64,000 bases of DNA from Octopus sinensis (lineage: Eukaryota), in assembly GCF_006345805.1 (NCBI RefSeq), contig NC_043004.1, positions 77,686,001-77,750,000 of the forward strand. Direction: 5' to 3'. The position numbers and the translations under genes were made by a program. The notes under the pieces are model-generated. The model was not told the DNA's origin, searched no databases, and was given only the letters and a program-made list of their open reading frames with translations. Every line of letters begins with the position of its first letter. Position 1 is the first letter of the stretch. Below are positions 1,106 to 46,051 of the stretch, one piece after another.

Positions 1106-4100
1106 CTAGGAAACAGAAATAAAATGAAAAAATATTAAAATATTATATATAAAATAGCTTTACATGTCGAAATCATTAAAAAAAACCTAACTGAAATTCA
1201 GATAGTTGGACTAGTCAATAAATACAACAGTAGCATTTTAGCCTTTTTTAAAAGAGAAGCCTTGTAAGTGAAAAAGAACCCCTAACCTCTAAAATTTCTA
1301 AATCCTTTAACTGGAAAATTAATAGTAACAGTCAAAAAAATTTTTAATTATAGTATAGTGTTATCCAAGATAGTTTAAAAATTTTTTCCTGCCAGTTTAA
1401 AGGAATGGTAATATTGCAAATGGATGGAAATCTAAATACGTCACCATGGAGTAGATATTTGTATAATAGTTTTCAGCTATAATGTTAATAACTTAAGTTA
1501 AAACCCATTAAATAAAACAATTTAAAAGAAAAAAAGTTATTCATTTTATATATCACTTTTCTGCTTGAAATTTTAAATAAATAAAACTGAAATGTTTCCA
1601 TACACTGAAAGGAGGAGAAAGGACAAATCTGACACTGAATTACAAAATAACTTCTAGCCAAATTGTAACTTCCATTAGAAGCATTTTAAAAATATCTGGT
1701 TCCATTTCGCCAGTAATATAAAGACTTGAATAAGTTTCATTAATTGAGATTATCCAGGCAATTAGTAGACAATAACTTCCTCTAAGAGTGTTTAAAATCT
1801 GGAAACAAAAACCTAAGGAGATAACTCCAATAATATCAACTAATCAGAATTTATTTTTAAAATTAAGTCAACACACACAGAAGTGGATCTTGTCTTTTTG
1901 TTTTTAGGTAAATGTTGCTAATTTTAAAATGTGCGTGTGGCAATAGCTGCTCTGTAGAACGAATTAAAGTCTAAAACAAACAAGGTAAATTTCTAAGACC
2001 AAATAAAGGTTAGTTGTTGCAGAAAATACAAATATATAAACATTAAACATTTCCAACATGAAATAACACAAAAATAAATACCAAACTGATATGCAAAAAA
2101 ATTAAAATATGAATGACTAACTGGAGTACTGGATAAGTCATGTTGAAGTCGAGAGGAGTCCAAAGTTGATCCTACTAGCACACTTGAAGACCGACTAAGT
2201 GAAGTTTGTATAGGACTACAACCTGACTGCTGAAGACTGTGGCTACTTCCTTGATATGAACCTACAATGTATAAATATACACACGAGTTAATCATGACGC
2301 TTTCAATACAATTCAGAACAGGAAACTGAAACAGAGATGAATTGATCTCTTGTAGCTGATGTAATAGTTAAAATATTTTCAAGATAACCAGATATCAAAT
2401 CCATTCAACATCTTTCAGCATTCAATACTAAAATACTAAATAAAGCTTTACAATTGGTTTTACTTTCAAAAACATTCAAAGATACACTGCAATACTTCTA
2501 GAAAATGCAATACAGAAGATAACTGTATTTGTTTTAACTACTTTTGGAAAAAATAGAAACTATAGGCAAATAGCGACTAAAGAGTAGTAGAACTGTCATA
2601 ATTACCAGTTTTATTAAATAATCATCGTTTAACGCCTGTTTTCCATGCTAGCATGGGTTGGACGGTTTGACCAGGATCTGGGAAGCCAGAAGGCTGCACC
2701 AGGCTCCAGTCTGATCTGGCAGTGTTTCTACAGCTGGATGCCCTTCCTAACGCCAACCACTCCATGAGTGTAGTGGGTGCTTTTTACATGCCAGGCGAGG
2801 CTGGCAACGGCCACAATTGGTTGGTGCTTTTTACATGCCACCGGCACAGAAGCCAGTCAAGGCGGAGCTGGCATCGGCCACATTCGGATGGTGCTTTTTA
2901 TGTGCCACTGGCACAGGGATCACAACTAAATATTTAATAATTTAATGAAGAAATATTTTTAAAAATATGAGTACGGAATCTTAATCGGATTACCATTTGG
3001 ACTTGAAATGTGCGTTCGTCCTGGGGTGGATGATTGCTGTTGAGCAGGACTATGATGAGATGGAGTATGACTATTACTGACGCTATCCTGGAAAAGAAGA
3101 ATTCACAGAGAAGATAGAGACAAGCTTGAATTGTAAACAAAATCCATAATACATTACAATATATCACATTTAACGATATAAAGAACTGGGTGCAATTACC
3201 TGAGCTAGGTTTGTTTCAGTGCAGCCTGGATTCTGATAGGGCTGTTGTAATAAAGCACATGGAGAACCAGTAGCTTTTGCTAGTAGCTGTGATGTGTTGA
3301 GAGCACTCAATGGTAATGCAAGTCGGGCATTCAAAGCAAGCAGATGGTCTCGACGAGCTGTTAATGATTTAATACAGTCTTCAAGTCGTCGATTTTCTGT
3401 TTTTAATTGATGCAAGAAACTCAGAAGAGAAGCAACTGCAACAGAACAAGATTTTGTAAGGAAGAATGAAATAACAATTCAAATATTACAGCTCCACAGA
3501 TGGAATAACAATTCAAAATTACAGCTTCATACTCTAAAGGTATATTATTAGTTAAATTTAGTTCATTTAAAACAAGTACTTTATTCCCTCATTGCTCCTT
3601 AACCTTCTAATCAAATCCCTTAACTTATTTTGGATAAGGTGACATAGACAAGAAAACTCAGCATGACAAGAGGATAAAGCTTCAAATCTAAATACACATA
3701 TAAAAATGTGTGGATATATAAATATACAATACCTCAGAGGGTATGCTTAATGCAGTCCACCACCCTACTACACACGATGCAGGTTACATATTTAAATAAT
3801 ATAGTCTGGAAAAAATATTTTTCCTTTCTCTTCTTATAGTGTTTGTAAAATGAAGTGAAGTTTGCAAGGCTTGCTAAAATTCCATGCTTCTTTCAATGTT
3901 TAAATTAGTATTTAAAATTTTCTTGCAAATCACAGAAAAAAAAAAAAAAAACCCCAACTATTTCATGGAGTTGCTTCTTCCATGAGATTTGCATTTAAAT
4001 TTTCTTCCTCTTCTTCATAAACATTATTTGACAATTTCAAAAAGTGTCTTATTTTCAAGATCTTTTGAATGAGAGTTAATCACTCACAACCATTAGATGT

Positions 4101-7100
4101 ATAAGAAGTTTTAAATCCATGGCTTTTCCCCATTCTGAACAATGCCTTCTGTAAAATTTTAAATCAATGATTCAAAACCAGAAGAATCATTTGACAAAGT
4201 CAGCACAACATACTGCCACATAGAACATATTGCCAGTACTAAGTTCAGCCCAATGTGCATTAATGTTTTGGAATATATTTCTCATCTAAATTTTCCAATG
4301 TGTTGCAATAATGATAAAGTTTTTCTTCCTGTTGTAATTTTAAAAGTTTTGTTAAAAGTTCACCATAAATAAGAAGCCTTTAAAAGTGCCTTGGTGCAGT
4401 GGTTGTAATACAAAATTTAATGGCAGAAAATTTATATGTTCATTTAAGTTAATGAAAATGTAATAGTAATAGATAATTAAAATTTGGACTATCCCTACAA
4501 AACAAAAATAATTTGTAAACTGGCAAAATAGCTAGTTCTAAAATCTCTATAAATTCCTGAAAAGGCATGTTTGTTGTCACTTCAACATGGCTGTTCCATA
4601 CGGAACGATGTTACTACAATATTTTTAACCCCAGAAGAACACCTTCTCCAGCTGGTTAACAACACAATTTGTGTCCGATGTATTGATGGAGAAGGTGTTC
4701 TCCTGGTCAAGTGTATGCATGATGCACAACTCCCGTATGATTCAGATATGGAAATATTTCTTTTCATGCCTATAGAATAGAACATAAGTGGTATCTTCCT
4801 TTTTCAGCAATTTCTGGATTTTTTAAGAAAAATATTTTAAAACATTTTGCTTGAAGTTTTACTAAAACAAAGTTACAACTTACTATCGAAATGCTGACCC
4901 TGTTCCATCAAAAACTGAGACCCCAAGTCCCATTGGTGTTCCAATAATTGTTCCATAGACTGAACAAGCCCATTTCTGAAATGAAACATTATCTGATAAA
5001 TATTGGTTTCAAATTTTGGCACAAGGCCAGCAATTGCTGAGGATAAGTGGATTACATTGACTTCAGTACTCAACTGGTACTTATTTTATCGGCCCTGAAA
5101 GGATGAAAAACAAAGTCTAACTAGGTGGAATTTGAACTCAGAATATAAAGATGGACAAACTGCTGTTAAACATTTTACATGGCATGCTAACAATTCTGCC
5201 AGCTTACCGCCTTATTATTTGATAAATATAAAATACAAAATAATATAAATATTAAAATACAAAAAAAACCAAAAACTAATGAAACATTTAACAGAATAAT
5301 TAAAGATGACACATTTTTGGAAAAGTAAAAAAAATTTCAAACACTTAATTTTGAAAGCCTTTATTTTTTAAATTGAGAAAATAGTGAGCAAATTCCAAAA
5401 GATAAAAATCTAGATTACTAATCCTATGCTACTTTTAAAATTTCAAATACTTTTATATTTGCATGTATTTCAATAAACTGCAACTGATGCTGACATACCA
5501 AAATCAGATGCTTGCCATTTAGAAGGGCATCCAACTGTAAAAATCATGCCTAAACTAACCTCACCTGTGCTAGTGGCATGTATAAAGCACTGAATCCACT
5601 CTGTGGAGTGGTTGGTGTTAGGAAGGGCATACAGCCATAAAATCCCTGCCAAAACAGAAACAGTAGCCTAGGGTAGTTTTTCTACCTGGCTGGCTCCTGT
5701 CAATTGTCCCATGCATGCATGAAAGATGGACATTAAATGATGATGATGGTGTATGTATGTGTGTCATTATCATCATTTAACGTCCGTTTTCCATTCTAGC
5801 ATGGGTTGGACGGTCTGACCGGGGTCTGGTAAGCCATGGAGACTGCACCAGGCTCCAGCCTGATTGGGCAGTGCTTTTACAGCTGGATGCCCTTCCTAAC
5901 GCCAACCACTCCGTGAGTGTAGTGGGTGTTTTTTACGTGCCACTGGCACAGGGGCCAGTGCAGGCGGCGCTGGCATCTGCCACATTCAGACGGTGCTTTT
6001 TACGTGTCACCGGCATGGGTGTCTTAACTGCAATTTCCATTTGAATTTTTATTTTGATGTACTTGACTCAATAGGTCTCCTCAAGAACAGCAGGTCACTC
6101 TACGATCCAAGGCTAGCACAGCAGGCCATCCTGCGAGCCATATATATATACGCACACACAAAAAAAATATGGTGAACATTGAGGATCTGCTGTTGGTGGT
6201 AGCAGCTCATCCCTTGAATCCAAGGATTGATTTCTCCTCCTGGACGAATATTCAGACTATTAATGCTAGTAGTGAACATGGCTAATGAGGACAATCCTCA
6301 CCTAGAACACACGTTTTTTGATGCAATGATACAAAGCCCAAGTTTCCCAACCATACAGAAGCATGGGATATAACAACAAGCTTGGTAAACTATAATCTTT
6401 GTTTTTGAATACACGTTTGGCTAGTGTACCATGAGCTGAGTAAACTGTTCTGATTCTTTGTTCCACATTTTGCTCAGAGATGCATTAGGCAGAGAGCACA
6501 CTTCCAAGGTAACTTGCTCCAGTAGTGTGCCTCAAATGATGATGTCAAAGTCTGAAAGGGTAGAATTCAGATTTAGTTGGGTGGGAATTTGAATATTTTT
6601 AGTATTTACAGTGAGCCCAAAATGTTGATATGCATTGGTGAAATTATCGACAGCTTGATACAGTTCTAAACATGAGTGGTTGAGTACCATGTTGCCATCA
6701 ACATACTGGAGTTCTGAGATTCACTTGGTACTGGTGACTTTCTTTGACCGAAAATTCACCAGGTTGAAGGGTTCTCCATGAAAACAATATCTGATATCCA
6801 CACCTGGCTGATCCAAAGACAGTTCACAGATCATCACAGTAAGGTATAAGAAGGAAAGCATAGGAGCAAATATGCAACCTTGTTTCAATCCATATGTAAT
6901 TGGGAGTTCTTCTGAGAGGAGATCATGATAAAAGGCATAGTCACACCATCATGGAGAGCGTGGATCAGAGAGACGAAATTAACAAGGACCATCCATCATG
7001 ACTGGTCTTGGTGCACTGTCAAAAGCATTTTCCAGATCATAGAAGACAAGGAAAAGGGATTTTTGTTACTCTCAACAATCATGTTTGCCTGGGACAGATG

Positions 7101-10100
7101 ATAATGTCTATAGTTTCATGAGATGCTCGAAAACCACACTGATATTCTGGAAGGACTCTTTCCATGATGATCTGGAGATGGTTCAAGATTATTGAAACAA
7201 AGAACTTTCCTACAATAGCAAGTAGGGAGATTCACAATAGTTTCCGCAGGATTTTCTATCTTCTTTCTAGAATATACTAATGATGACGGCATCTTTAAGA
7301 TCATTAAAGACATCTTTAGAAGAGTTTAGTTGGCAGCAGCAGACCACCAAGTTGCAGCAATTCAAATGGGATGTTATCAAGTCCTGGAGCTTTATTTACT
7401 TTCAAACATTTCACTGCCATCAGGAACTCTTGATACAACAGAGTAGTCTTCATCCAAAGTTGTAAAGGTTAGAAAGGGATTTTCTCAGAAAGTCTTTTGC
7501 TGTTGTTGACTTGCGATTTAGCAAAACAAAAATATTCCTCCCAGCAGTCTAGGATGTTAACATTGTCTGCCATTTGATGATTTTATAGGACCAAACAGTT
7601 GTTGATTCCAGCGCCTGCCACTTCAAGCTTTCCTCCATCTGAAAGTCATGTTTCACTCAGTGCAGCAATGTCAATGTTGAGCCTGAGGAGATAAGAGACA
7701 AATGCAGTTTGTCTTTTGGATCAGTCTGAGTTGTCAGAGTCCAAAAGGATTCTCATGTTCCATGTTCCTACAGTTAGTTTCGCTTTGGCCTTAGGGTTTC
7801 AGTTGGTTGCAGAAGGATGATGACCCACTGGGTGCAGCTACTCAACCAGGTGGTAAGAATCCTGAGTAGTCACTGGGTCTTGGGAAAGCAACATCACACA
7901 CCTGCCACCCACCAACAGGTAGATCACCTAAATTTGCTCCCATTATCCTTATCCTCTTGCTGTTGGACTTGACAAATTTTGGTTTAAGCATGGAAGGAAG
8001 AAGCAGGAAAGTAAGACAAACAGTAGAAACAGAAAATCCAAAGTCAGGGAGCTGATGGTATAGGTTTGATTAAGGTGGATTACAACTTGCAGGGTGACCC
8101 ATGCACTGAGGTTTCAAGAGCTTCTGCAGTACATAAAAGACAAGACAGACAGGATCTAAAGATGAAACTGCAACAGACTGCCACAGATTCTAAGTTATAG
8201 TTGAACCGTGCCTCCACAGCCAGCTCCATCTAGCCATAACAATATGAGAGGTTCTTCTTTAGCTTCTTCGTACACTTTTGGAGAGTTGCTGGTTGATGGA
8301 GGAGAGTCAGCCTGTGGCTCTCCTTTGACAGATGCTGCTACCCATCACACCCTTCCCAAAGCGACATACTCAGAGAGGAGTCTTTGGTCAGCAACAGCCC
8401 AACCATGTCCTGGGAGGATGGGGGGGGGGGGGTATATGGTCTCCTGTTTCTGGCTCTACATGGAGACAGCCCAGATCCTAGTTTGCTTCTATAGGTACTG
8501 CTAATATCACAACAGTTACAAGCATTGGCCCAAATGTTAGATCATCATTCTTAACACTTCCTCAATTGCAGACAATAAACTTGTCAGTGGATTATGTGAC
8601 AACCAGCATGTAGACAAATGTACACAGCAGACTAAGCTCAAAATAATTATATCTTGAATACCTTGTCATAGAAAAGCCATGCAAAAGAGAGTGACTATTT
8701 TCTGTGCCTGACTGACAATGACAGACTGATGAAAGGTTTGTGAAAACTGATTAGATCATTCGAGAGGACTGTATGTAGAAACAGCATCAAGTAACAGTTT
8801 AGATCCTTCTGGAAACACTTAAAATATTTCACTTACAGCAAACAGCTAGTTATTTGCCAAAGTTTTTTTGAGTATAAAATTTCAGTTGTGAGGAATGAAT
8901 AATTTGTTTCTATATCAAGCAAACATTGAAAGAAACTCAACAGATAATTGAAAAGTGTCAATTAGCAAAATAAAATAAATGGATAAATAAATCACTCACC
9001 CTACATTCTCATTTAGTAGCTTTTCACTGTTAATCGAAGGGAAAATTTTTGGTGGTCCCAAAAGGCAGCCAACACTGAGTGGAGACGTGCCTTCATTGGC
9101 TAATGGTGGAGCTGTTAAATAGAGAAAATAATTTCATTTATTAAAAATATTAAATTTCTAAATATCTCAGAGAGATATAAGCGGTGGTGGAGCGATAGAG
9201 CGGTTGTATACTGTCAACTTATCATGACAGTCCTGTAAAGGGAATCACACTCACTGCTATTTAGCCCTAAGAAGCATCGACGCTTCCTGTCAGCTTTGAC
9301 ACATTTCCTGTGTCCTTATATTTAAGAAGGAGAGACAAGCACCCCCAACAGCTAGGCCTGCATCCAGAGACATGCATGTTTCAGAGTCTTGCTCATCATC
9401 AGTCTGGTGTAGCATGGCCCTGCTTGTTGAAGATGCTTGTAAAGCCTTCGTAAATAGATATATTTTCAGTGAAGTTTATTCACTGATCCCCAAAATTAGA
9501 AATATTAAATTTCTAAATATCTCAGAGAGATATGAGCAGTGGTGGAACAATAGAGTGGTTGTATACTGTCAACTTAACGTGACAGTCCCATAAAGGGACA
9601 CAGGAAATGTGTCAAAGCCGACAGGAGGCGTCGATGCTTCCTAGGGCTAAATAGCAGTGGTGTGATTCCCTTTACAGGACTGTCACGATAAGCTGACAGT
9701 ATACAACTGCTCTAAATTTATTTAGAATAAGTGGAAAAAGTAAATAAATAAATTTTTTAAAGTTATAACTAATTCCAATAATACAACTTTAGAAATGTAT
9801 TTCAGTTCAACTTTTTATCATTAAAACTTATCTTCCCATTTCTGGAGTTAACAAGCTTGACCAGCTAGAATTAGCAGCCAGGTCACAAACAAATGTCTTT
9901 AAAAGATATTAAATAACTGTGCTATGTTCTATACATTTGAAATAAAAAAAAAAAGTAGGAATACTTTTCAGTCATAGTCTTGCTTTAACAACAACTGGTA
10001 TAAAGATGAACAAGAGGTAGCAATTAAAGCATTTATTGTCTATTATCTATGTTGTTAAAATCATTTTAATGGTGTTTTACACAAGATATAAAATACAAAT

Positions 10101-13100
10101 TCAAAACATAAAAAAAAAAGAAATTGCAATGCTTTCAAAAATTTGTTAACTAAACCTATGTTAAATTTAGTTATATTCTAGAAAAAACATTTAATGCTGT
10201 ATTATTATACTTGGAGACGGTGGGGCTTTTTTTGTTTTTTGCCACTTAAACATACACACATTATTTATTTGATCTTCACTTTAGTTTTTGCTTGCATTAT
10301 TTTTAGTTTATGTCCATCAAAGTTCCTTTGTCACAAATTCTGTGACAAAAGAACTCATCAGCACCTCTCCTTATCCTGTTTATTCCATTTTTGCCTTCTG
10401 TAGTATGGATCACTATCTATGAATGTATTAATGTCTGTATATGTGTGTGTGTTTGTATTTAGTATGCGTATCGTCATCATCGTTTAACGTCCGGTTTCCA
10501 TGCTAGCATGGGTTGGATGAATGACTGAGGGCTGGTGAACCAAATGGCTGCACCAGGCTTCAATCTTGATCTGGCAGAGTTTCTACAGCTGGATGCCCTT
10601 CCTAATTCCAACCACTCCGAGAGTGTAGTGGGTGCTTTTATGTGCCACCGGTACGGGGCCAGTCAGGCGGTACTGGCAATGACCTCGCTCGAATTTTTTA
10701 CACATGCCACCAGCACAGGTGCCAGTAAGGCGTCATTGGTAATGATCACGCTCGAATGGTGCTCTTGGCACCCTACTAGCACAAGTGCCAGTAAGGTGAT
10801 GCTGGTAACGATCACGCTTGAATGGTGCCTTTTAAGTGCCACTGGCACAGATGCCGGTTAGCCGCTCTGTCAATGATCACACTCGTATGGTGCTCTTTGC
10901 ACCCCACTAGCACGGACGCCAGTCATCGAATTTGATTAAAATCATTTTAATGGTGTTTTATTTTTTCTTCTCTTTCTTGTTCCATTTTTAGTATGTGTGT
11001 CTTGCGTGTGTCATTCATTTATTTTGCTTCATTCTGTTTTTAGTTGTCAGGTTGCATAGTGTGGTGAAGTGGAGGGGTGTCATTACTCCATTCACGTTTC
11101 CTGTTGGTCTATTTTCTATTATATGTGGTCTCCACAATCTGTTTGAGTGTTGTGTCTGTTTTATGTGTTGATAAGATCCTAGCATCCATGTCGTCAACAA
11201 AAACTACATGTTCTAATTGAGCGTGTTGGCAGAGGACTGAGGGGCTTTTCTCCTTCAGGAGGTCCTTGATACATAGTGATTTAGCAACTAGTCTTAGGTA
11301 CCACATTCAGTGAATATATATATCATCATCATCATCACCATTTAATGTCTGTTTTCCATGCTGGCATGGATTGGATGATGTCACAGGAGCAGGAAAACCA
11401 GTGGGTAGTGCCAAGCTCTATTGCCTGATTTGGCATAGTTTCTATAGGAAAGGATGTAGTATGGTGCCTATTCTGCTCTCATGTGATCAGAGCTGCTCAT
11501 TAGTACTATACATAGGGAAGTAATGAGTGTTAGGCGATGAGATGTGAGGGGAAAATGCTTGATGAGCTGATAGAATGGAGGTGGAGCAGAGCCCGGCACA
11601 TATAAGCATTACTAAGGTGGATTTAGGATAGCAATTCTGCTGTGGTAGACGGGTCTTCTTGAGCACAGCAAGATGCCAGTAACCTCAGTCCTTTGTCATC
11701 TCCTCCATAAGGCTCAGCACCTTGAGTTCAGCCTTCAATACTTCATCCCATGATTTTCTAGATTTCCCTCTTCCACAAGTTCCTGCTACTTTGAGTGGTC
11801 AGCACTTCTTTTATGCAAATTTTCTCACCCATACACACCACAAGACCAAAACAGCATAGTCTTCTCTCTTGTACACTACATAGAATAGATATGCTTCATG
11901 AAATGGCACTGGTTTGAGTTAGAGCATGGCAAATAATCAGTCTAGCAGATCACAGAAAAATATACAAGAACAAGGGCAAAGACTTACAATAACAGCTGTA
12001 TCTATGTGTACATGTACACATATTTACTAGGCACACATCTATATAATAAAATATTTTATGCACAACAAGGAAGTTTACTTACGAGTAAGGTTTGGTGATG
12101 TAGATGTTTCTAAATTTGAAGTTAAATGGGATCCAGTAACAACTGATGTTGCCAATATACCATTATTCTCCAAATCTGAATGAGAAACAAAATTTGAACA
12201 GGAAGTGAACTATTTTAATTACAAAAACAAATATACACTTATTGACATTTATTTTACAGCCAGCCACAAGTAGATGGCAAGGTCTGAAAATTAACAACTG
12301 AAGTCTACGCTATTTTGATCAACTTCAAAACTTTATGGTAAAATTTTCTTAAATTGGTGATAGTCTGCATCAGTAAAATCAGTCAATAGGAAGATTCAAA
12401 ATAAGTAAAGTTCATTTGCTGTGATGAGTTTAGCGTCTACTGGTTCAAGCCTTAACTCAATCAAGATTGAGTAAAGAATGGTGTCGTCATTCAGATTAGA
12501 AGCATTCTTTCTATACCAGCGATGCACGTTTACATTCTTATTACATTCAGTCTTCTAATTTTAAAATTCATCAGTTTTTCTGATACATGCTTAATGATGA
12601 ACCATCAAAACCACATATATACAATTAAGTGTATACTGTAGAAATCCATATAAAATTTTATTGTCACTAAATTATCCAACTATTTATTTATTAATTCAAC
12701 AATAATATTTACAATTACACTTTCTATGTTGTTGTACAGGGTTTATGTTAATATTAGTAATAATTGAATATTTATATATGTACTCATGGATATGGATTAT
12801 ATTTATATATATATATATTCAAATGTGTGTGTATTTTGTTTTATATTTATATTTTTATGATTGTACTTTAAAATCTCTGACGAGGCCTAGAGATATATAT
12901 AAGTACCTCATTTTCAACTGCCTATCACCTCAATACACTTGACTAATATAGGTACAATGAGATACTATTATCTATAGGCTGAAACAGCTGTAAGTGATTT
13001 TAATAATTTATATTCATGTTTTTTAATAATTACTAGTATTCTTATCTTATATGCATTGAATAATATACTATATGTATATTATTATGGTTGTCGTTTTGAT

Positions 13101-14142
13101 AAATAAATAAGTCAACATTTTAATGTCCTAAAGTTGAACCAACTAATGTGCTTCTTCATTTTCTTATTTGCAATATAAATTAATGATAAAATATTTCTTT
13201 ACCTTCACCCATTTAATACAATAAGTAAGTTAATTGCATTGCAATTAAAAACACTTGTGTATTAATAACAGGGTATTATACCAACAGTATATTGGATAAA
13301 TATTATCCCTTAGTGAGTTGGATCCATAACCCCTAATTTACTTGGTGTTACATACAATATATATAAATATAAATATATATATATGTATATATATATATAT
13401 ACTAGCAAAGATACTCAGCATTGCTTGAGATTAAAATGGTATAGTTTTCATTCTTTTACTTGTTTCAGTCACGTGACTGTGGCCATGCTGGAGCACCGCC
13501 TTTAGTCAAATCGACCCCAGGATTTGTTTTTTGTAAGCCTAGTACTTATTCTATCAGTGTCCATTGCCGAACAACTATGTTACGAGGACGTAAACATAGT
13601 AACATCGGCTGTCAAACGATGGTGGGGGTACAAACAAACACACACAAATATACACATATATACAAGTCTTCTTTCAGTTTGTGTAAGAAATCCACTCACA
13701 AGGCTTTGGTTGGCCTGACACAAATATGTATATATATGAGCGTGGCCGTTTGCCAGCCTCGTCTGGCACCTGTGTCGGTGGCACATAAAATCACCCACTA
13801 CACTCTCGGAGTGGTTGGCGTTAGGAAGGGCATCCAGCTGTAGAAACACTGCCAGATCTGACTGGACTGGTGCAGCTTTCGGGCTCCCCAGACCCCAGTT
13901 GAACCGTCCAACCCATGCTAGCATGGAAAGCGGACGTTAAATGATGATGATGATGATGATATATATATATATATATTTAGGACAGACTTCTTTCAGTTTC
14001 CGTCAACCAAATCCACTCACATGGCTTTGGTCAGCCCAAGGCTATAGTAGAAGACACTTGCCCAAGGTACCACACATTGGGACTGAACCAGGAACGATGT
14101 GGTTGAGAAGCAAGCTTCTTATGACAAAGCCATACCCACACC

Positions 14143-17100: not shown

Positions 17101-20100
17101 TAGTGTGTGTGTGTGTGTATATATATATACACATACACACACACACACACACTAAATGATGTGTCTTGAAAAAATATAATTTCTTATGACTTATACAAAA
17201 CCTCAGGTTTAAGAAAATTTTAAAGGTTTGTTTCATAGAGAACATGTGAGTCTTACATTTTCAAATCAAAATTTTGTGGCCTGATAAAGTGATTTTACTT
17301 GTCTTCCCTTTAAGATTGTTATAGCTCACATTTTTTATTCATCCTATCATATAAATCTTATTATCATAACATAAATTTGTGTTAGTACTTGTATTTGGAG
17401 ATGGTCATTTTCTTTTTCTTTTTTTTTTGCCAATTAACCACAAACTATATATTCATTCTTCACTTCAGCTTTATTATTATTATTCCCATTTTAGTGTTCT
17501 TTATCTGAAATCTTTTGTCACATATCCTGTGATCTTTTCAGCAACTTACCATCCCATGTGTCTTCTCCTGTTGAGAGTCACTGAAGAGGTCACAGGATGT
17601 GTGACAAAAGATTTCAGATGAAGGACACTAAAATAAGAATAATAATAATAAAACTGAAGTGAAGAACAAGTATATAGTGCATGTAGTTAATTTACAGAAA
17701 AAAAAGACCATCTCCAAATATATATTTCTTTACTACCCACAAGGGGCTAAACATAGAGGGGACAAACAAGGACAGACAAAGGGATTAAGTCGATTACATT
17801 GACCCCAGTGCGAAACTGGTACTTATTTAATCGAGCCCGAAAGGATGAAAGGCAAAGTCGACCTCGGCGGAATTTGAACTCAGAACGTAGCGACAGATGA
17901 AATACCGCTAAGCATTTCGTCCAACATGCTAACGTTTCTGCCAGCTCACCACCCCAACAAAATCTGTTTCAACACAGAATTTCACATGAGGAATCTTGCT
18001 AAACAAATACATGTATTAGTACTGTTTATTGGTCTCTTTCTACATAATGTAATGCAGCTTAGAATGGATGTTAAGATTAAATATATTTGAATACAGTTCT
18101 TCACAAATATGAAAAAGAGATATATAAATGTGGCATATAAAAACTAACACTTATGCAAAATATAATGCAAGAAATTATATTTTCTCAAGAAGCATCACAT
18201 ATGTAAGCAGGGAGTGAAAAAACAGTTCTCGTTTCTCTTTTGTATAATTAAAATCTCCAAATACTGTTTTGAAAAATAAATGAAGAAAAAACAAAAAAAA
18301 ACAAAAACAAAGAAGAGAGTGCATGATTTATCTATTTTGCAGCATCTACTTTATCCATTTTGATAATTCAGGAAAGTAAATGTACATTTTTACATTTCCC
18401 ATTATTGCTAGTCTCAATATTAATTATACCACTTTCATCAATGCTAAAAAATTAAATCTTACCCAAGTGGACCAGATGTGATGGGAGCATCTGATTTTTT
18501 CTGCGCCAAAGTTTTCTTGCTGTCAGAGGGAGACATGTCTGAAGAAGATGATGGTGATGTGGTAGCCAAAATATCTTTATTACTTTTGCTTTTGTTATTG
18601 TTAGACGACAGCTGGCATTTGTTCTTCTTGTTTTTCTTATCTTGTTTTTCTGCAGATCTTTACAACAGAGAAGAGGAATAAGTACTTTGTAAATATAGAA
18701 AATTAAAAAGTAAACAAAAAAATATGAACAAATATTTATATACTATTTAGTTTAGGGAAATACTAATTAGACATTATAAGCACAAATTTTAGTCTGAAAG
18801 AACAATAGGCTATACCAGTAGACTTGTTGGGGTGAGGGTTTCAGTCTCAAATTAGTGTATAATATCTAATAACATTTTTATTAAAATCATCATCATCGTT
18901 TAAGGTCCACTTTCCATGCTAGCATGGGTTGGATGTATGACTGAGGGCTGGCAAACCAGATGGCTGCACCAGGCTTCAATCTTGATCTGGCAGAGTTTCT
19001 ACAGCTGGATGCCCTTCCTAACACCAACCACTCCAAGGGTGTTGTGGGTGCTTTTACGTGCCACCGGCACAAGGCCAGTCAGGTGGCACTGGCAATGACC
19101 TCGCTCGAATCTTTTACACATGCTACCGGCGCGGGTGCCAGTAAGGCGATGCTGGTAACGATCACGCTCGAATGGTGTTTTTTACGTGCCAAACCATTAA
19201 TTTACAAATTAGGAATCAGTACTGTCTTTAGCCTCAACAATTCCTTATATCCCTTCTGACAATAGTACAAGTTCAGGACATGCTAATGAATTGGTATCTT
19301 AACAGACTTAATCAAAAACTGCAGTAAACTTCCCAAGCCTGATGGAATGAGATAAAGTTCAAAAGTCTGAAAACCAATATGGTAATTACCAAAATACTAG
19401 TTAATACCAATAAGCACAAAATCCCAGAGTAGGAAGGAAATAAAAGCTGCACACTCAATGGAACATATAGAAAATAGATTCTCTCAATGTCTGGGGGGAT
19501 CCTTAGAAATAGTAGATAGCTTCCATTACCTAGGCAACCAAATTAGTAGTGGAAGAGGAAGCTCCAAAAGCATAGTTGCTAGAATAAAAATAGGCCGGGC
19601 AAAGTCCAGAGAGCTGCTACCTTTGTTAGTAACATATGGACCTCTCCCTCAAAATGACAGGCAGATTGTATAATGCCTGTGTCCGAACAGCTATGCTGCA
19701 TAGCAGTGAAACATGGGCTGTGACTACATAGCACATCAAAGGTTTGAAGGAAATGAAACCAGCATGCTCTGCTGGATGGATAATGTCAGTATGCATGTAC
19801 AACAGAGTGTAAATGATTTAAGAGAAAAATTGGGTATAAGAGGCATGAGATGTCGTTTGAAAGAGAGAAGATTGCATAAAGTGATCTCTGATTGTGGAGG
19901 GAGCCTGTGGAAAGAGGAGACCAAGGAAGATGTGAGACAAAGTGATGAGAAAGGATCTTCAGCTATTCAGTCTCACTAAGGAAATTACAAGAGAGTGAAA
20001 CATTTGGTGATTTGTTGTGCTACAGAAGACACGACAAGTTAAGTCAAATCATATCCTTTACAGCCATAACCCTACTACCTCTCACAAAATTCTGTCCTCT

Positions 20101-23100
20101 GGTAAGCCTCATACACAACCATTTCTCCAACACCTCTACCAGCCACTGCCCCCCCCCCCAGTACAACATCACTTGCTGTCTCTAAATATTTCCCCTCACA
20201 CACTTATGGTACATCTCCTCTATCCCCTCTGTACTACCTACACTCATCTACCTCTGCTCTTTGTCAGTAGACCCTATCTTGGTCTCTTTCTCTTTTTCTC
20301 TATCTCTGTCCCACCTCCCTCTGCTTCCTTGTTCTACTGAGGTAGCCAAGTATCTTCCTTGTAGTAATAGAGCTATCCCTGACCCCCTATCATATTCCAA
20401 CCTCTTGTCTGGCACACGGCCACTTTCACTCTCTTGTCTTGCAGGCCTCTTGGCAACCCCATGAGTACTTGTGCCAGCACCACGTAATAAGCACCTGGAC
20501 TGGTAGCATGTAGAAAGCACCCATGCCAGTGCCATGTAAAAAAGCTCCACATAAGAAGAGCACCTGTGCTGGTTCTGCATAAAAAAACACCCAGTACATT
20601 CTGTAAAGTGGTTGGCATTAAGGAGGACATCCAGCCATAAAAACCTTGCCAAAACAGATGACTGGAGCCTGGTGCAGCCCTCCGGCTTGCTAGATCCTGT
20701 CAATCCACCCAAACCATAAACAACTTCAAATGCATTTTATGTACAAGTAGTTAACAGTAAGAGCAATAGATAAAAATGAGATCCATGAACTCCTCAGATG
20801 AATTACTAGATATAATTGATTGTTGCTAATCTAGAATGGCTGAATCAAGTAAACAAGGAATGAAAGGAATTCACAGAAAAGTTACTACTGCTGGCAACAG
20901 ATTTCTTCTATAGAAAATTAATTGGGATGAATCGTAAGAAGTTTAATGCTATAGAGTATCAAGTGGGTCATTACTCTGAGTATGTCTGTAGAGGCTGGGG
21001 AGAAAGTTTTTAAGTATAGTTTTTAAGCCCAAAATGGCTTGAAAGTCAAAACATGCCGGCGGGAAATAACATCACTAGTTGAGACAAGCTGACACTGAAT
21101 CAGCTTCACTGACTGACAGGTGACGGTCGTTTAGAGAATGCGCGGGCTAAGACTACGCGCCTTCACTAGCCAGTTAAGGTGAGACAGTGTCATGTGACAA
21201 CTTGCTGGGGCTGCCTGCTGGAGCCTATGCGACAGGTATTTAAAGGGAAAAATTTGACAAGTCAGTCAGTCATCGGCTGACACTCACTGATGCTACATCG
21301 AAGAGGCCAGAGAACAGAAGAAAGAAGACATGCACCCAACACCAGAGCTGAAGACAGCTCTGAATGGGGGGGGGGGCTGCCACATCAAAATGGTAGAGGA
21401 GTAGGGGCCGAAACCGGACGTGGTTCCTCCTGATGATGTCTTGAGCTAACTGGATCCTATAAAGGAGCTGTTGTGGTAGCAGACCACGAAACACGGTTGT
21501 AATTCCTCCTATAGTGGAAGTACAATGTTAATCTGCATATAAAATTTAACAGCTCAAGTGAGTGAAATGAGTGGTTGAATATTAGAAAGTAATGTACACA
21601 AGAGAAAAAAAAAAAAAAGAAATGACATGTAATGTCATTTGAAGATGAATGCTAATGACAAAAGATTGAAGCAGGTGACAATGAGCAGTAAAGCAAACTT
21701 GTTCAAGTTATGCAAGTATGAGTGGGACAAAAACAATACTTAATGACTATTACTTGTTAAAATCAGTATTCTATAAACTTCTGCAGCTTTGGTCAGTTAG
21801 ATCAGATCTCTTACCACAAAATGTGAAACAGAAAGTATAAAAGATATGTCAGACTATACTATATTGTCATGGTTGTAGTGCTACCATGTCGTATTTTGCT
21901 TATGTCTTAAAGAAGAGAGAACAGTACTAATGATTCTATGATTAGTGGCAGGGAGTTATCCTCATATCCACAAACTAACCTTAACTGCTTGCAACAGAGT
22001 CAACTTAAAGACACCCACAAACTGAGTGATGGTGTCAAACTGGGCAGTGGATTGAATCTAGGTTTTATGCTGCTTTTGACTTTTTTTACTTAAAATTTCT
22101 TACAGTATTAAAAAATATACATATTACATTGTCTAGTAAATAAAATTAATATTATAGCACCTTAATCAGCATTTATTCTGTATTTATAAATGAAATTTAT
22201 ATAAATCTCAATAAAATTGAAGCACTGGGAAATGTTTATCTATGGGAGTTGTTTATTAGCAAATTGTCTTAAGAACCTTTGTGGCAACAGGGTCTGGGCA
22301 GCTTTATTATACATCGTAATTTGGGTTTAGATGGTTACCAGTGGAAATAAGTCAAAAGACTGAGAGAGTCAAAGCACTCTAATAGAGTAAATATATATAC
22401 ATTTATATGTATGTATGTGTGTATTGAATACAGGAATTAAAATAATCAAAATCAAAGCTCATTTCAATCAAAAACAAAAATATATACGAACTTATCATAC
22501 ATGAAAATTTAATATATATCAGCAGCTTAGCCAGTGTGTGTGCTGCCCTAAAAATGCCAACCCCATAAAAACATTGCTTTGGACAGACTATTTCCCTCCC
22601 CCCTCCCCCAGCAATACTACCTGATATATACAATTCAATTTACTTTAAAAGAAAAGAAATTCACATTTAAGCATTTTACAATGTGGAACAAAATACTTCT
22701 CATAATAAAGATATTTGTGATAGCAATATCATTAATGATAATTTCATATGGACTTTAAATTTCAAGAATGTTTAAGCTGAGAAGAAAATGGAGATAAGTA
22801 AGAATTTCAAATAATGTACAAAAATAATTAACCCTAACTATAGTGGCCTATATGAGTTAGATTGCATATCTCTCTCTACATATAAACGGCAAAATGTCTG
22901 TCTGTGTGTGTGTGTCCTTTATACAAATCCACAATTTTTCAGTTAGAGGATTCGCACTTTCTATGGTCATTCAAAACCGTCCAAGGGTGGTCGTGCACAT
23001 CTTTACATTTCCCCAGTCACCCTACAAACCCATTAAAAAATCAATAGAAGTGACTTTTTTGTGAACTTTCTATCCAAAACCCAATCAAAATGCCCGAAAC

Positions 23101-26100
23101 TTGATACGCCAATTGAATGCCAGCTAGCCGTATGTGATTGGTCGGAGATTTGGACAGTACTCGCGTGTATGTGCATACGCATGCAGCTGTATATGCATGC
23201 ACTAGCAGTATGACCAGGCAACGCCGGGTCATAGTGCTAGTGATAATAATATTTTTGTTTGAGTCCAAAGAAATGATAATTAACATTTTCACATTTTATA
23301 TATTTTAGTTTTATTATTAAAAAAATAAAATGCATTCATTTTTCTTTGATCTTTCAATCAACATTTTTGTTATTACATGGCTTACATTATTAAAAGTATA
23401 TATCAGACTAATGTTTTACAAACTATTTGACAGAAATCTTTTTTTTTTTTAAATTTGATCTTCATAACTTAACCCAAACCATTCTGTCTATTTCAAATAA
23501 AAAGTTTCTATTAACAACAATTCTTGTGGAACTATTGGTCAACCCACAGGAAAACAAGACCAAAATAGTAGTTTGTCATGAAAGTAGCAAGGGTAAATTA
23601 ACTTGCTGTCATTAACAAAGTGAAATATAGCACATCCCCTAAGTCATTCCTGACTTTCTGATTTCCCTGAGAAACAAAATCTGAATTGCACTCAAGTTTT
23701 TTAAAAGTGATTATTGTAATTTATGAAAGTGCTATAAAGGAAAAACAAGTTGCCAAATATAAACAATAATCCGAGGAGGTAACTTCTTAAAAACAATGAA
23801 AAATTGAATTAATAACAGGGAATAATCAAAATCAAAATCAAATTCGATGACTGGCATCCGTACTAGCGGGGTGCAAAGAGCACCATATGAGTGTGATCAT
23901 TGACAGAGAGGCTAACCGGCTTCCGTGCCAGTGGCACTTAAAAGGTACCATTCGAGTGTGATCGTTACCAGCGTTGCCTTAAAGAGCACCATCCGAGCGT
24001 GATCGTTGCCAGAGCGGCTACCTGGCCTCTGTGCCGGCGGCACGTAAAAGACACCATTCGAGCGTGATCGTTACCAGCATTGCCTTACTGGCACCTGTGC
24101 CAGTGGAATGTGTAAAAGATTCGAGCGAGGTTGTTGCCAGTACCAGTGGCACATAAAAGCACCCACTAAACTCTCGGAGTGGTTGGCGTTAGGAAGGGCA
24201 TCCAGCTGTAGAAACTCTGCCAGATCAAGATTGAAGCCTGGTGCAGCCATCTGGTTTGCCAGCCCTCATTCGACCAACCCATGCTAGCATGGAAAGCGGA
24301 CGTTAAACGATGATGATGATGATGGGTCAGATACTTCACATGTAAGAATGTTCTTACTATGTTATAAGTCAATACTTCAGATACCGTAACAGTTTGTTAC
24401 ATCTGTATGGTGATGGAAGCAACATATAAGGGGTAACTTTACATTAAGGTGAGGAACATACAATTTCCTAGAATTCAGACCATTCATAGATCCAGCAAAA
24501 TAAAATGGAAAAGGTGTTGCGAAGGAGGATGGCAAGGGAGATGCACTGGAACAGCCCCTGGCTCACAGGACTTGCATTTGTAGATACCCATCTCCACCTG
24601 AATAGCGGTGAGCAGGGATATGGTCTGGGGGCAGTGCCACAGACTTGACCATAAACCTCTCTATTCTACTTGTACGACACATCCCATATCTGATTTGTCG
24701 AGTATTTATCTATGTTGATAATAGTCTCATTTACTGACTTTAACGACACCTGTCACCTCATAACTATAAGACATGCTGTAGAATGCTATAATTGTGACTA
24801 ATATTTGTTAAGTTTGTTTTAAACAAACAGTAAAACAGCCATTTGATGCATTAGAAATATGCAGACAATTAAATTAGTACTAAAGTGAAAACAATAATAA
24901 TGGACACCCAAAATAATACTATATATTTCTTTTTTTTTTTTTGTTGCATTCATTATAAGCTAGAATTTCAAATAATGTACCAACTGATCGTGGCCGTTAC
25001 CAGCCTTCCCTGGCACCTATGCCAGTGGCACGGAAAAAGCACCATCCGTACGTGGCCGATGCCAGCGTCGCCTTTACTGGCTTCCATGCCGGTGGCATGT
25101 AAGAAGCACCAATCGTTCGTGGCTGTTGCCAGCCTACCCTGGCACATAAAAACCACCCACTACACTCACGAAGTGGTTGGCATTAGGAAGGGCATCCAGC
25201 TTTAGAAACACTGCCAGATCAGACTGGAGCCTGGTGCAGCCTCCTGACTTCCCAGACCCCGGTTGAACCATCCAACCCATGCTAGCATGGAAAACGGCAT
25301 TAAACAATGATGATGATGATGTACAAAAATAATTTACCCTAACTATAATGATCTATATGAGTTAGATTGCATATCTTTAATATTTTTGTTTGTGTCCAAA
25401 GAAATGATAATTAACATTTTCACATTTTATATATTTTAGTTTTATTAATAAAAAAATAAAATGCATTCATTTTTCAATCAACTATTTGACAGAAATCTTG
25501 TTTTTTTTTTTTTAATTTGATCTTCATAACTTGACCCAAAACATTCTGTCCATCTCAAATAAAACGTCTCTACCAACAACAAACCTGCTGTAAAAACCAC
25601 ATTTTTTTTTGTCTGTTATATAGAAAAATTAAGGTTATTTTTATATCACTAAGGCAATAGCTAAAAATTCATGCTCTAAAAATTACTTTGCCTTCAACAA
25701 ATTCTTCAGCCTTTTTCTCAGCACTTATCCAAAGTTATAGAAAGAACTTGCAAATGAACTTTATATTACCCTGATAAATAACTTTTCTCAACTAGTGAAT
25801 TACTAAATTTTCACTCCAACATTTTTAATATGTTTCCCAGGCAAGGCACAGTATAGTAGAGAATTTATCTTCACTTTGAAAACGTTACTTTCAGTAAAGT
25901 TATTTCCCTTGACATGTGCAATGCGTTATCAATGTTTTACATCTGTAGTGTGCAGCCATTTCAAATAGTGGCTGCCAATTCGTAGTAGCTGGCAATATGA
26001 TGTAATGTTGTATTGCCGAAGAAATATGATTGTCATTTTCCCCATTGGTTGAAATAACTGCTCATATAGGAATTCTGAAAATTAGTTAAAGAACATTTTT

Positions 26101-32100: not shown

Positions 32101-35100
32101 TCTGGCCAACTTCACAGATTGCCTGATATCTAACCACTATAGAGTGAAGTGTTAGACAATGCAATATGAATTAGTCTGGCACCAGAGCACAGAGCAGGCC
32201 TCTGGCTCATAGAACCCTATTAATTCATCTAACTTAGGCTAGCACAGAAAATAAATATTAAATGATGATTTTATTTTTTATGTGCATACACACACATGAT
32301 GATGATGATGATGACAGACACTAATTAATGATACTTTCTTTCTCTAGCTGCAAATAACCAAATATAGCATTAAATATATCACAGGATAAAAATGAGGGAA
32401 AACTGACACATTGGGCATATAGAGTTTCCCATCATTGTGGATTAGCCATTTTTCTGCTATTGTCTGACTTCAGCTTTGTTTGTATATGGAGAGCTAAAAA
32501 TGTATAACATGTATTTTCTACTCCAAAATCAGATTCATTTCATAAATTCTTTACAATAACAATGTAGGCCATGTCTGAAATGTGATTGAAATTAAAGTCT
32601 ATTCTATACTTCTCCGTGAAATGCACTTTCCTCGTAACTAATATAGGAAATAAAATCAGAACTTGGTTTGAAATTATTTAACTCAGCCATGTTTATACAA
32701 AATATGTGCATTATATTAGCTGGTTTCTATTCACTGAAAAAGAAAGAGAACTACAGGCATATTAAAGACCTCCATGCTAATTATGAAGAAAGCATCAAAT
32801 TTTTGTTCAATATCAAAGAAAGATGTACAAAGGAAATCAAAACTGTGTAACAGTCAAAAACTAAGCACACAAAAATGTAGTTACATTTTTGGCACACACA
32901 CACAGGTAACCAAAACTTTAACCCTTTAGTGTTTAAACTGGCCATATCTGGCCCAGATATTCTACATGTTTTATATTCAAACTGGCCATATCTAGCCTCT
33001 CACACCTAACCTACATTGACATTCTAAAAATAGACAATCACATCATTGAAACCTCAAAGCTATAAGATAATGCATAATCAACCCTTTCGTCACTGTATTT
33101 ATTTTGAGATGTTCTGTGTTTCTTTCAATTATTTTAAGCTAGTGTTGTGAACATAAATTGTGACTAAGGTTTGATGGAAGATTTTAAATCAAAACTTATG
33201 AAAACAAGACATTTGTACTACAGAGCCAGTTTCAGCCGGGTTAGTAACAAAAGGGTTAATTCAAAACAATTTGAGTGAAAAAGTATTACATTTAACAGAG
33301 TAATCTGAACACTAAAGGGTTAAATGCACTAGATATAAAAAGAAGTTAGTAGCTGCAGATGTTCAAAGACAGAAGAGAAATTTGATTTTTGAACATACAA
33401 TAAAAAATTTGCAAGAAAAGCAAGTGACCTACATATGCAAGTAAGCACTGGCTGCACTGGTATGGATGTGAATGAATGAGGAGTGCTGAGAGAAAAAATA
33501 CTATACAGTAACAGCAGAAAATAACTATAAAAAAAGGAACACTAAGGAAATAATGAAGTTTGTTCTCAGAATGTAGAACCTCACATAAGGCAAAATGCAG
33601 ACCTGTCCAATACAATGCCAATATGAAAAAACAGGAATTAAACTTCTTATGACAATGAAACTAATTTTATAACAGTACTGAGCAGAGGGTAATACAAGAT
33701 TTTGGAAAAAGCAATATTAATGCTAAAAACTAACAAAAGATCTTTATAACTTTTTAAAATAAATTATAAAAGAATTTTTAGAAAATACTAAAGTACACTA
33801 ATTTCAAGTATAATTGTATATAATTAATATTTCAAACCAAATATGTACATATACATGCATAGAACCTCATACAGCCTGTCACATGGTTGGCTTGTTGACT
33901 AAACTGGCAACCTCACCAAGCAAACTTGCTAAAGAGGATAGTTACGGGACACCCTGTGGGGTAAAAAACATGACCCATCAAAGGGCAGAGGAACTCACAA
34001 GAGTCAACAACTATCCGAGTGAGGTCTGCTGTTCATCAGTCTCATGGCATACTTGCACCAACTGTCGGTGTCAGCAGTACCAAAAGTGTGAATGGTCCCA
34101 TACAAGCTGTTACCACTTTAAACAAGTAACTCAGTGGGCTGCCCAAGAGATTTGATTACTCTACATTTTACAAGATCATCCTGAGAAAGGAAAAGAAAAG
34201 GAAAATTCTTCGGTCCCTTTGCATTGAATACAACAACAGAGTCCATCACATGCATATAAAGCTATTTACTCCGTTCATTTGCAAGGTATTTTTGTATGTA
34301 TCAAGATTGTTTCAAACATCTTAATATGATTATTAACCCCTTTGATACCTACCAGCCCAAGGCTGCTCTTGCTTCTATATGAACTTTTTATATAAAGTGA
34401 TCTAAATTAAAATTTCGCATTAAAATTCCTTGTTAATTTATCTTCCAATTACCAGCTTAGTAATGGCCAAGACATTTTACCAAATTCTTTATTTTCAAAA
34501 TTAATTGAAACAAATGCAATGTAGTTCAACAGAAATATGGTAACAAAAGGGTTAAACAATGTTTAAGAATAACTTTGCTACCACCTTCATTTTTATTCAA
34601 ATCAAATATGATAAAACCAACCTTCTATTTGAGGAAGCATGTAATTGAACATTCAAAAATAGAACAAAATCTTCAAAGAAATATTGGATATGTTCATAAA
34701 AAATAAGATGACTCACCAATTTTTTATAATGATACATACAGTATCCACAATATTTAACATTGTCACCATAATTTCCAGCTTCTTCACATAAAAGACCTTG
34801 TGCTTGAGCACTGAAAGAAATGTAATTATTCAGATAGAAATCAAACAAAAACAAAATTTTGGTTAGTGAAAACTAATCAAGTTACAAAATTCTTATTTTA
34901 ATTCAAGACTATTTCAATTGTATGTATTGCAATTTAGGCTGTAATGGAACCGTTTCAAGTTAAAAGAGAAACAGTATGGACTTTCACAACCTTACCAGGT
35001 GACATGGAAATTTTGTTTACATCCATTTTTGTTGCATTGCATACAAGCCCCTGTAGCAGCTTTACTTTCACGACTTTGTTCTTCACAAATATAACACACC

Positions 35101-45024: not shown

Positions 45025-46051
45025 CAAAAAATCAAAACAAATCAAAATAGATGAACATCAATGGAATTTGTATCTCTGTGGTACCAGTGCCGGTGGCACG
45101 TGGCACATAAGAAAACCATCCGAACGTGGCCGTAGCCAGTACTGCATCGACTGGCCTCCGTGCTGTGGGCACGTAACAAGCACCATCCGATCGTGGCCGT
45201 TTGCCAGCCTCATCTGGCACCTGTGTCGGTGGCACATAAAAACACCATCCGAGCGTGGCCGTCTGCCAGCCTCGTCTGGCACCTGTGTCGGTGGCACATA
45301 AAAACACCATCCGAGCGTGGCCGTCTGCCAGCCTCGTCTGGCACCTGTGTCGGTGGCACATAAAAAACACCATCCGAGCGTGGCCGTTTGCCAGCCTCGT
45401 CTGGCACCTGTGTCGGTGGCACATAAAATCACCCACTACACTCTCGGAGTGGTTGGCGTTAGGAAGGGCATCCAGCTGTAGAAACACTGCCAGATCTGAC
45501 TGGACTGGTGCAGCTTTCGGGCTCCCCAGACCCCAGTTGAACCGTCCAACCCATGCTAGCATGGAAAGCGGACGTTAAATGATGATGATGATGATGATGA
45601 TGATATATATATATATATGGGCATCACACACACACACACAAACATATATGTACATACACCTATTGCATACATGTTTTTGCACGCCTCTGCCCCTGCCACT
45701 GTCCCACCACCACCTCCTACTCGAGTAATACCATCAGTTGAAGCAAATTTGGCACCCGGAAATAAGTTTTGTAACAGGAATAGAGAAGCCTGCCTTCTCC
45801 CGCAGAGATGTGAAAGTCATATCTCTCCTTTTGAAAACATGAACAGTTTCGAAACATTGTTTACAAAATAATAGCTGATCGTTTGCAAAGAAGAGTGTCT
45901 ACAGTCAACACGTAGGTCTTTTGCTCTGGTAACCTCTGCTCTCTCCCATGTTCACGCACGACCAGCTATATATCGCTATGAGTAGAGCAACAGATTCAGC
46001 TAATTTGGAAATTAGTTTTGGAGAAACGGAGAATATCGTTTATATTGTGTG

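Follow-up and report, generated by a model that had tools for sequence, protein, structure and literature searches.

We have analysed a stretch of 64,000 nt from the genome of Octopus sinensis (assembly GCF_006345805.1, contig NC_043004.1, positions 77,686,001 to 77,750,000; hereafter the window, in whose coordinates all positions are given), in which a 44-nt motif shaped like a type-I hammerhead ribozyme lies on the minus strand, inside an intron of an AF10-like gene. This motif is probably the hammerhead-type module of a non-autonomous retroelement of ca. 355 nt, highly self-paired as RNA, that resembles the non-LTR (long terminal repeat) retrozymes of metazoans. The family is a new and apparently undescribed representative of elements already known, and its locus in the window is an ordinary one.

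Read on the minus strand from 9407 to 9364, the motif runs CCAGA-CUGAUGA-U-GAG-CAAGA-CUC-U-GAA-ACAUGCAUGU-C and, after the predicted cut, UCUGG. Helix I pairs CCAGA (9407-9403) with UCUGG (9368-9364). The core CUGAUGA (9402-9396) is followed by U10.1 (9395) and by helix II, in which GAG (9394-9392) pairs with CUC (9386-9384) across the loop CAAGA, leaving a U.U at 10.1/11.1; then come U11.1 (9383) and GAA (9382-9380). The palindrome ACAUGCAUGU (9379-9370) provides helix III (ACA/UGU) and its tetraloop UGCA, and the predicted cut falls between C17 (9369) and U1.1 (9368). An earlier note on this DNA had listed these letters and coordinates, all of which are present on the minus strand, and had pointed to a U-U at the closing pair of stem II, which is seen at 9395/9383.

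In the whole window a type-I hammerhead descriptor matches at this site alone. Its chance expectation, obtained semi-analytically from the window's own base composition, is 0.0025-0.006 per 64 kb, or ca. 100-250 matches in a genome of 2.7 Gb, so that an isolated match would mean little. However, this is not a lone match, as a whole family of repeats has the motif in its consensus. The motif and the helix that surrounds it are as follows.

9364 to 9407, minus strand: hammerhead-like type-I motif, read from the sequence; the sole descriptor match in the window, with one mismatch to the 25-mer of the family.
9349 to 9429, minus strand: extended helix I around the motif, from copy alignments, pair counts, a blind covariation scan and a fold in which helix I has P of ca. 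0.9.

The repeat that carries the motif spans 9140-9714 in the window, with homology edges that are sharp at both ends, and it is made up of three pieces.

9140 to 9494, minus strand (the sense of the motif): full 355-nt unit of a non-autonomous retroelement, from homology edges, copy extents, target-site duplications and a fold z-score of -5.3.
9495 to 9598, minus strand: partial unit upstream of the full one, which repeats 9140-9243 in the same direction with 90% identity, from the direct repeat at a spacing of 355.
9590 to 9714, plus strand: inverted 5'-truncated piece, the reverse complement of 9196-9321, from inverted repeats that are 93-95% complementary and the edge at 9714.

The 3' end at 9140 is a fixed end of the family. 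The partial unit amounts to a terminal repeat like a pseudo-LTR, without the hammerhead motif, and similar extents of more than one unit length are also found in other genomic copies. A 111-nt query around the motif retrieved at least 41 scored copies with 87-94% identity, and 1,274 first-look candidates genome-wide, while the downstream flank alone gave 2,049 first-look candidates. The exact 25-mer CTGATGAYGAGCAAGACTCAGAAAC occurs 111 times in the genome, versus none for the reversed control. Since the copies diverge from each other by ca. 10%, these 111 exact occurrences extrapolate to a family of roughly 1,500 copies; overall we put the family at ca. 1,500-2,000.

The copies bear the marks of retroposition. 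Their 5' ends are scattered, from 9598 down to 9355 in window coordinates, and their 3' ends are fixed at ca. 9136-9142 or 9190-9197; upstream of the motif the identity to the consensus drops steadily. This combination of 5' truncation and fixed 3' ends establishes that the RNA sense of the element is the strand bearing the motif. Target-site duplications of 8-20 nt flank the copies, many of which were inserted into (TA)n or (TC)n microsatellites. Tandem or head-to-head arrangements are found at ca. one quarter of the loci, with many inverted pairs. A typical copy comprises 1.1-1.3 units with a single motif, and a few are dimers with two motifs ca. 300-350 nt apart (L002/L043, L066). Penelope-like elements are known for pseudo-LTRs, adjacent inverted 5'-truncated copies, a bias towards microsatellites and target-site duplications of variable length (PMC8557442). 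Partial tandem ends, an adjacent inverted 5'-truncated copy, variable target-site duplications and the microsatellite bias are all found here; in other words, the scattered 5' ends, target-site duplications, microsatellite insertion, partial tandems and inverted pieces are the signature of Penelope-like retrotransposition.

Five copies (L027, L029, L094, L125 and L126) have in common a foreign 5' junction, AATAAAGAGA(A/G)AA joined to GGCCATGC, just upstream of distal helix I, which suggests a chimeric subfamily with another 5' module. On the antisense (plus) strand, positions ca. 9180-9258 fold into a cloverleaf-like shape with an acceptor-like stem and three arms. A short interspersed nuclear element (SINE) derived from a tRNA on that strand was considered and rejected, as ARAGORN made no tRNA call and the polarity of truncation is the opposite one.

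To describe the motif at the level of the family we have used 86 aligned copies, 50 of them chosen via the core sequence and 36 via the flanks. All 11 hammerhead core bases are found in the family consensus, where they cap a long helix I, and the type-I core (C3 U4 G5 A6 N7 G8 A9, G12 A13 A14, A15.1-U16.1 and H17) is present in the window copy, in the consensus and in the 111 exact 25-mers. Consensus helix I has 6 bp, UCCAGA/UCUGGA, and continues beyond an internal loop with GGCC/GGCC and CAGCUA/UAGCUG (the distal strands of the window copy are 9419-9416 with 9358-9355 and 9429-9424 with 9354-9349). Helix II of the consensus reads Y.A, G-C, A-U, G-C, with the loop CAAGA. As shown by 60 copies picked by the 25-mer alone, helix III in most of the family reads ACAUGU or ACUAGU and so consists of a single A-U pair and a palindromic tetraloop, CAUG or CUAG. 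The subfamily of the window has CAUG duplicated (ACAUGCAUGU), and hence a 3-bp helix III with the tetraloop UGCA.

The variation among the 86 copies follows the pairing of this structure in several places. The distal pair of helix I is G-C in 43 copies, G.U in 18, A-U in 18 and A.C in five, and the proximal pair is C-G in 55, U-A in 15 and C.A in nine. Two pairs that our initial model lacked surfaced in a blind scan, namely the sixth of helix I (U-A 54, C-G 11, U.G 6) and one in the extended rod (A-U 46, G-C 14). Two of the six helix I pairs thus change compensatorily, in addition to the distal pair with its G-C, G.U and A-U. The centre of the tetraloop is AU in 59 copies and UA in 24 (other in three). 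Cells in which both bases had changed numbered 59, versus 23 +/- 3.6 when columns were shuffled, a value reached by none of 500 shuffles. As the subfamilies are linked, all pairs of variable columns were scanned blindly; 15 of the 300 looked compensatory (background ca. 4%), among them all three of the predicted pairs in which both columns vary. The earlier note had named compensatory stem changes among genomic copies as a test, and they do occur, in helix I and in the tetraloop, between subfamilies. The covariation thus shows selection at the level of the RNA, which in the master copies has maintained helix I with the rod and has kept loop 3 palindromic.

The element also folds strongly. The 353-nt consensus monomer (from cut site to cut site), folded as a circle, reaches -135.9 kcal/mol with 69% of its bases paired and a z-score of -8.6 against dinucleotide shuffles; the unit in the window has z = -5.3. 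With a unit length inside the ca. 170-400 nt of retrozymes, a low GC content (41-44%) and a highly self-paired monomer, the family has the gross features of these elements. Helix I is predicted with P of ca. 0.9 in the fold of an 81-nt context around the motif. The thermodynamic fold of the 44-mer by itself (minimum free energy -7.3 kcal/mol, z = 0.10) does not give the hammerhead shape.

There are several results that weigh against a hammerhead here. We used the hammerhead covariance models RF00163, RF00008 and RF02275-RF02277 of Rfam: at gathering score no Rfam family at all matches in the window, and at E <= 10 no hammerhead family matches within 9250-9520, where only chance-level snoRNA-like (small nucleolar RNA) matches appear, nor in any of three copies of the subfamily or four of the majority type. 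The earlier note's near-canonical type I hammerhead with a palindromic stem III is supported as to shape, and as to the Penelope or retrozyme kind of element, but not as to its being near-canonical; no hammerhead model scores it. The closing pair 10.1-11.1, normally a Watson-Crick G-C, is C.A in 55 of the 86 copies, U-A in 28 and U.U in two, including that of the window. Position 10.1 is a pyrimidine in the family; a pyrimidine lacks the N7 by which the usual purine, G10.1, helps to bind the metal at the A9/G10.1 site. In the 81-nt context neither helix II (P 0.13) nor helix III (P 0.001) is predicted. Helix II (GAG/CUC) is invariant and shows no covariation among the 86 copies. This invariance, together with that of the core, says nothing in the case of the 50 copies, which had been chosen by these very sequences; in the 36 chosen by their flanks only 10.1 varies, and there the invariance is suggestive. 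Nor does folding alone choose a strand, as the antisense of the window unit folds nearly as well (z = -4.9), and the G.U versus C.A intermediates, which might have told the strands apart, did not agree between the two pairs. No long tandem arrays were seen among the copy extents examined. Finally, we looked at the 5' ends for a pile-up that could be the footprint of cleavage in vivo, and only one or two of ca. 30 copies start at the predicted cut site, the others being scattered over 9355-9382 and beyond.

The alternative that fares best against these results is that the motif is a non-catalytic look-alike or a relic, i.e., that the retroposon has a structured RNA whose hairpin is kept for recognition by the reverse transcriptase or for RNA stability, and that the core letters are a relic or a coincidence. 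We consider this possible, if somewhat improbable. It would account for the silence of the Rfam models, for the unpaired 10.1/11.1 in most copies and the pyrimidine at 10.1, and for the lack of a pile-up of 5' ends at the cut site. All of the covariation falls in parts that a plain hairpin would need as well (helix I with its extended rod, and the tetraloop), and with linked subfamilies ca. 4% of unrelated pairs of variable columns also appear compensatory. A loose descriptor is, moreover, expected by chance at the genome-wide frequency given above. However, the 11 core bases, A15.1-U16.1 and C17 abut both strands of the covarying helix I, for which the probability by chance is ca. 2e-7 per given hairpin, as estimated from base frequencies. 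The palindrome has been kept through the change from CAUG to CUAG (59 versus 24 copies, other 3), something that matters only for a dimeric helix III. Canonical metazoan type-I hammerheads have helices of 6/4/1-2 bp and a small palindromic loop, and act as dimers in tandem transcripts (PMC4209133); the 6/4/1 and palindromic tetraloop of the octopus family are this same plan. Besides, a U.U at 10.1/11.1 is tolerated in an active ribozyme, since the axolotl HHR_Amex2, whose helix II starts with this mismatch, cleaves 22% in 1 h when monomeric and far better when dimeric (PMC7229834).

We lean towards a genuine hammerhead that would act as a dimer in this family. The element would most likely be copied by the reverse transcriptase and endonuclease of Penelope-like elements. 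The module at the tip of the long helix I, with its full core, a 6-bp helix I, a helix II of four positions, a helix III of 1 bp and the palindromic tetraloop, would pair with a second one when two units are transcribed in tandem, and the dimer would then cleave; the master copies would cut themselves after C17. Going further, one may imagine a live cephalopod retrozyme. Its hammerhead would work with no purine at 10.1 and hence would do without the classical metal site at A9/G10.1; its dimers would cleave and give rise to abundant circular RNAs of ca. 353 nt; and its many sense copies in introns, that of the window among them, would now and then nick host pre-mRNAs. All of this together we regard as unlikely.

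A possible partner is at hand in the same genome. The GIY-YIG endonuclease domain has at least 147 matches. Some of these fall within frames that stay open over 780-883 aa, and many score identically. The long frames (for example, at C10:27570372, C6:82399801, C1:207477583, C3:65736423 and C6:12733272) look like young, possibly intact Penelope-like elements. There are also canonical type-I hammerheads that RF00163 does recognize, with 34-48 bits (above the Rfam cut-off) and the form GUACCUGAAGAGACCCAGAACGGGUCGAAACAUGUGUCGUAC, in other short repeats of the genome. Examples are C13:29988995-29989039 (L009) and a tandem pair 431 nt apart at C16:25146363 and 25146794 (L014/L015), with others among L010-L018. 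The ten loci bearing RF00163 that we compared with the repeat of the window share no sequence with it. The best genomic match of the HH9 type, at C12:50750397-50750463 (L019), scores 35 bits against a cut-off of 52 and has a plausible core, CUGAAGAG...CGAAAUC.

If the family does cleave, retrozyme-type circular-RNA biology would extend to the cephalopods, and there would be a natural hammerhead with a pyrimidine at 10.1, useful for studying what the metal site requires. In the present repeat catalogues of cephalopods, hundreds of short families are placed together under "unclassified SINE", and a 2026 repeat annotation of Octopus vulgaris does not mention ribozymes (PMC13282606).

What the insertion means for the gene is a separate question. 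On the minus strand there are stop-free frames with extended-PHD exons at 37461-37700 (Pfam zf-HC5HC2H_2), reading 'WCHVVCALFIPEAWFANVQTMEPIVLKNVPQERFNK', and at 34597-34872, reading 'GLLCEEAGNYGDNVKYCGYCMYHYKKL', followed by a frame with the octapeptide motif ('MEQLLEHQW') at 4873-5085 and a leucine-zipper frame at 3170-3478. An extended PHD, an octapeptide motif and a leucine zipper are what we take to be the hallmarks of the AF10/AF17 family. As these exon frames lie on the minus strand, the motif is sense to the gene and intronic, which is what the earlier note had said of it. The exon next to the element is the following.

9000 to 9111, minus strand: putative AF10-like exon, whose frame is open and whose borders are AG (acceptor) and GTGAGT (donor).

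Between the 3' end of the element at 9140 and the upstream side of the putative acceptor AG of this exon there are 28 nt (window 9112-9140), and for this reason the branch point or the polypyrimidine tract of the intron may lie at the edge of, or inside, transposon-derived sequence.

One reading, which follows the earlier note, is that the window copy is an active intronic ribozyme, which cuts the nascent AF10-like intron and competes with splicing upstream of the exons for the octapeptide motif and leucine zipper (OM-LZ), the host either exploiting this or suffering from it. The copy is indeed sense and intronic, its 3' end is close to the putative acceptor, and a 3-bp helix III with a tetraloop could permit action as a monomer. 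That genic copies can do harm is also hinted at by the depletion of vertebrate retrozymes from introns, as described in a 2026 preprint (10.64898/2026.07.22.740005). Nevertheless, we find the proposal very improbable. The window copy is one of ca. 1,500-2,000, in no way distinguished among its relatives, and has drifted from the consensus of its subfamily at 18 of 345 aligned positions (p = 0.052; Jukes-Cantor (JC) distance 0.054). Five substitutions and one indel fall in the motif or in helix I. At 9383 an A has become U at position 11.1; at 9408 T to A has cost helix I its sixth pair; and the distal part of this helix is weaker because of G to A at 9427, T to A at 9425 and an extra G at 9420. 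The difference at 9365 reflects the mixture of subfamilies in the consensus. The share of changes in the motif and helix I equals that expected for neutral decay and looks unlike preservation. As this is the sole copy of the family in the window, a dimer in cis is impossible. An intron that is cleaved slowly may be spliced as usual, as known from experiments with ribozymes in introns; in those attributed to Dye et al. in 2006 and Fong et al. in 2009, co-transcriptional splicing was reportedly disturbed only by fast cleavage. At best the window copy may be a weak and solitary cutter of the intron after 9369, because of its 3-bp helix III. By the calibration of Octopus vulgaris repeats, for which a JC distance of 0.065 corresponds to ca. 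18 million years (PMC13282606), it would have been inserted roughly 15 million years ago. It is an ordinary insertion in decay, with no sign in our analysis of use by the host or of a role in AF10 splicing; the competition with splicing that the earlier note envisaged is not supported for a solitary, drifted copy without an Rfam match, and for the AF10-like gene the element amounts to an ordinary decaying intronic transposon.

An intronic box C/D snoRNA-like element, with CCAGA/UCUGG as terminal stem, UGAUGA as C box and CUGA as D box, has in its favour only the weak Rfam matches over 9368-9405 to SNORD109A (13.6 bits, E = 5.5) and sR41 (9.9 bits, E = 5), and is effectively refuted, since the gathering thresholds are 35 and 54 bits and the scores stay at 10-17 bits across the window and majority-type copies, apart from the window copy just one copy has CUGA (the family consensus having CAGA), 12 nt separate the supposed D box from the terminal stem, and the whole motif has just 44 nt where ca. 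60-90 nt or more are expected.

The window holds other mobile sequences. A fragment of a long interspersed nuclear element (LINE), with a 397-aa open frame and a reverse-transcriptase domain (Pfam RVT_1, E = 4e-8), lies at 37954-39147 on the minus strand, is intronic and lies next to the extended-PHD frame at 37461-37700. More frames resembling reverse transcriptase are found at ca. 6.3-6.9, 29-30.5, 49.4-50.4, 55.7-56.1 and 60.5-61.4 kb. An abundant short repeat, probably the dominant SINE of this genome, occurs at least 16 times in the 64 kb, on both strands, and has a stop-free reading '...LQSDLAVFLQLDALPNANHS...'. On the plus strand it is at 2671-2937, 5781-6044, 10529-10861, 18945-19259, 42059-42361, 56155-56583 and 59079-59513, and on the minus strand at 13580-13936, 20248-20736, 24071-24265, 25134-25352, 36841-37035, 45032-45574, 48877-49092, 56810-57121 and 61542-61841.

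Among known systems, the amniote hammerheads HH9 and HH10 (Rfam RF02275/RF02277) are the ones that come to mind for a type-I hammerhead shape placed in sense in an intron of a protein-coding gene. However, these are single-copy, deeply conserved and near-canonical, whereas the motif of the window belongs to a young repeat with many copies that has no Rfam match. The likeness to the axolotl Rtz_353 with its HHR_Amex2 (PMC7229834) lies in a unit of ca. 350 nt, a helix III made of a short stem and a tetraloop, and the U.U at the base of helix II in the window copy. The axolotl element, unlike ours, is a vertebrate tandem satellite of ca. 60,000 copies; loop-loop contacts are recognizable in it, and the U.U is a rare derived state in the octopus family (two of 86 copies).

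With the minimal hammerheads that lie in pseudo-LTRs of Penelope-like elements, as described by Cervera & de la Pena in 2014 (PMC4209133), the octopus family shares the Penelope-type architecture of insertion (partial tandems, inverted 5'-truncated copies and microsatellite targets), the small palindromic helix III, a presumed dimeric action and an irregularity in the base with which helix II begins on its 5' side. The proportions of the helices are different, with 6-8 bp in helix II and 4-5 bp in helix I in theirs, and 3-4 bp in helix II and a long helix I in ours. Besides, the octopus repeat has no open reading frame, in contrast to the Penelope-like elements themselves.

The non-LTR retrozymes of metazoans (Cervera & de la Pena 2020, PMC7229834) are repeats of ca. 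170-400 nt (350-390 bp in the mussel), with low GC, highly self-paired RNAs and target-site duplications of more than 4 nt, which coexist with Penelope-like elements. Our family departs from them in being mostly dispersed, as copies of 1.1-1.3 units with few dimers and no long tandem arrays, and in having Y.A or U-A rather than G-C at 10.1/11.1 and going unrecognized by the Rfam hammerhead models. In the rest it is very much like them, with a unit of 353-355 nt, a GC content of 41-44%, a self-paired monomer (z = -8.6), one motif of type-I hammerhead shape per unit, target-site duplications longer than 4 nt, and a host of the mollusc type whose genome also holds Penelope-like elements and minimal hammerheads.

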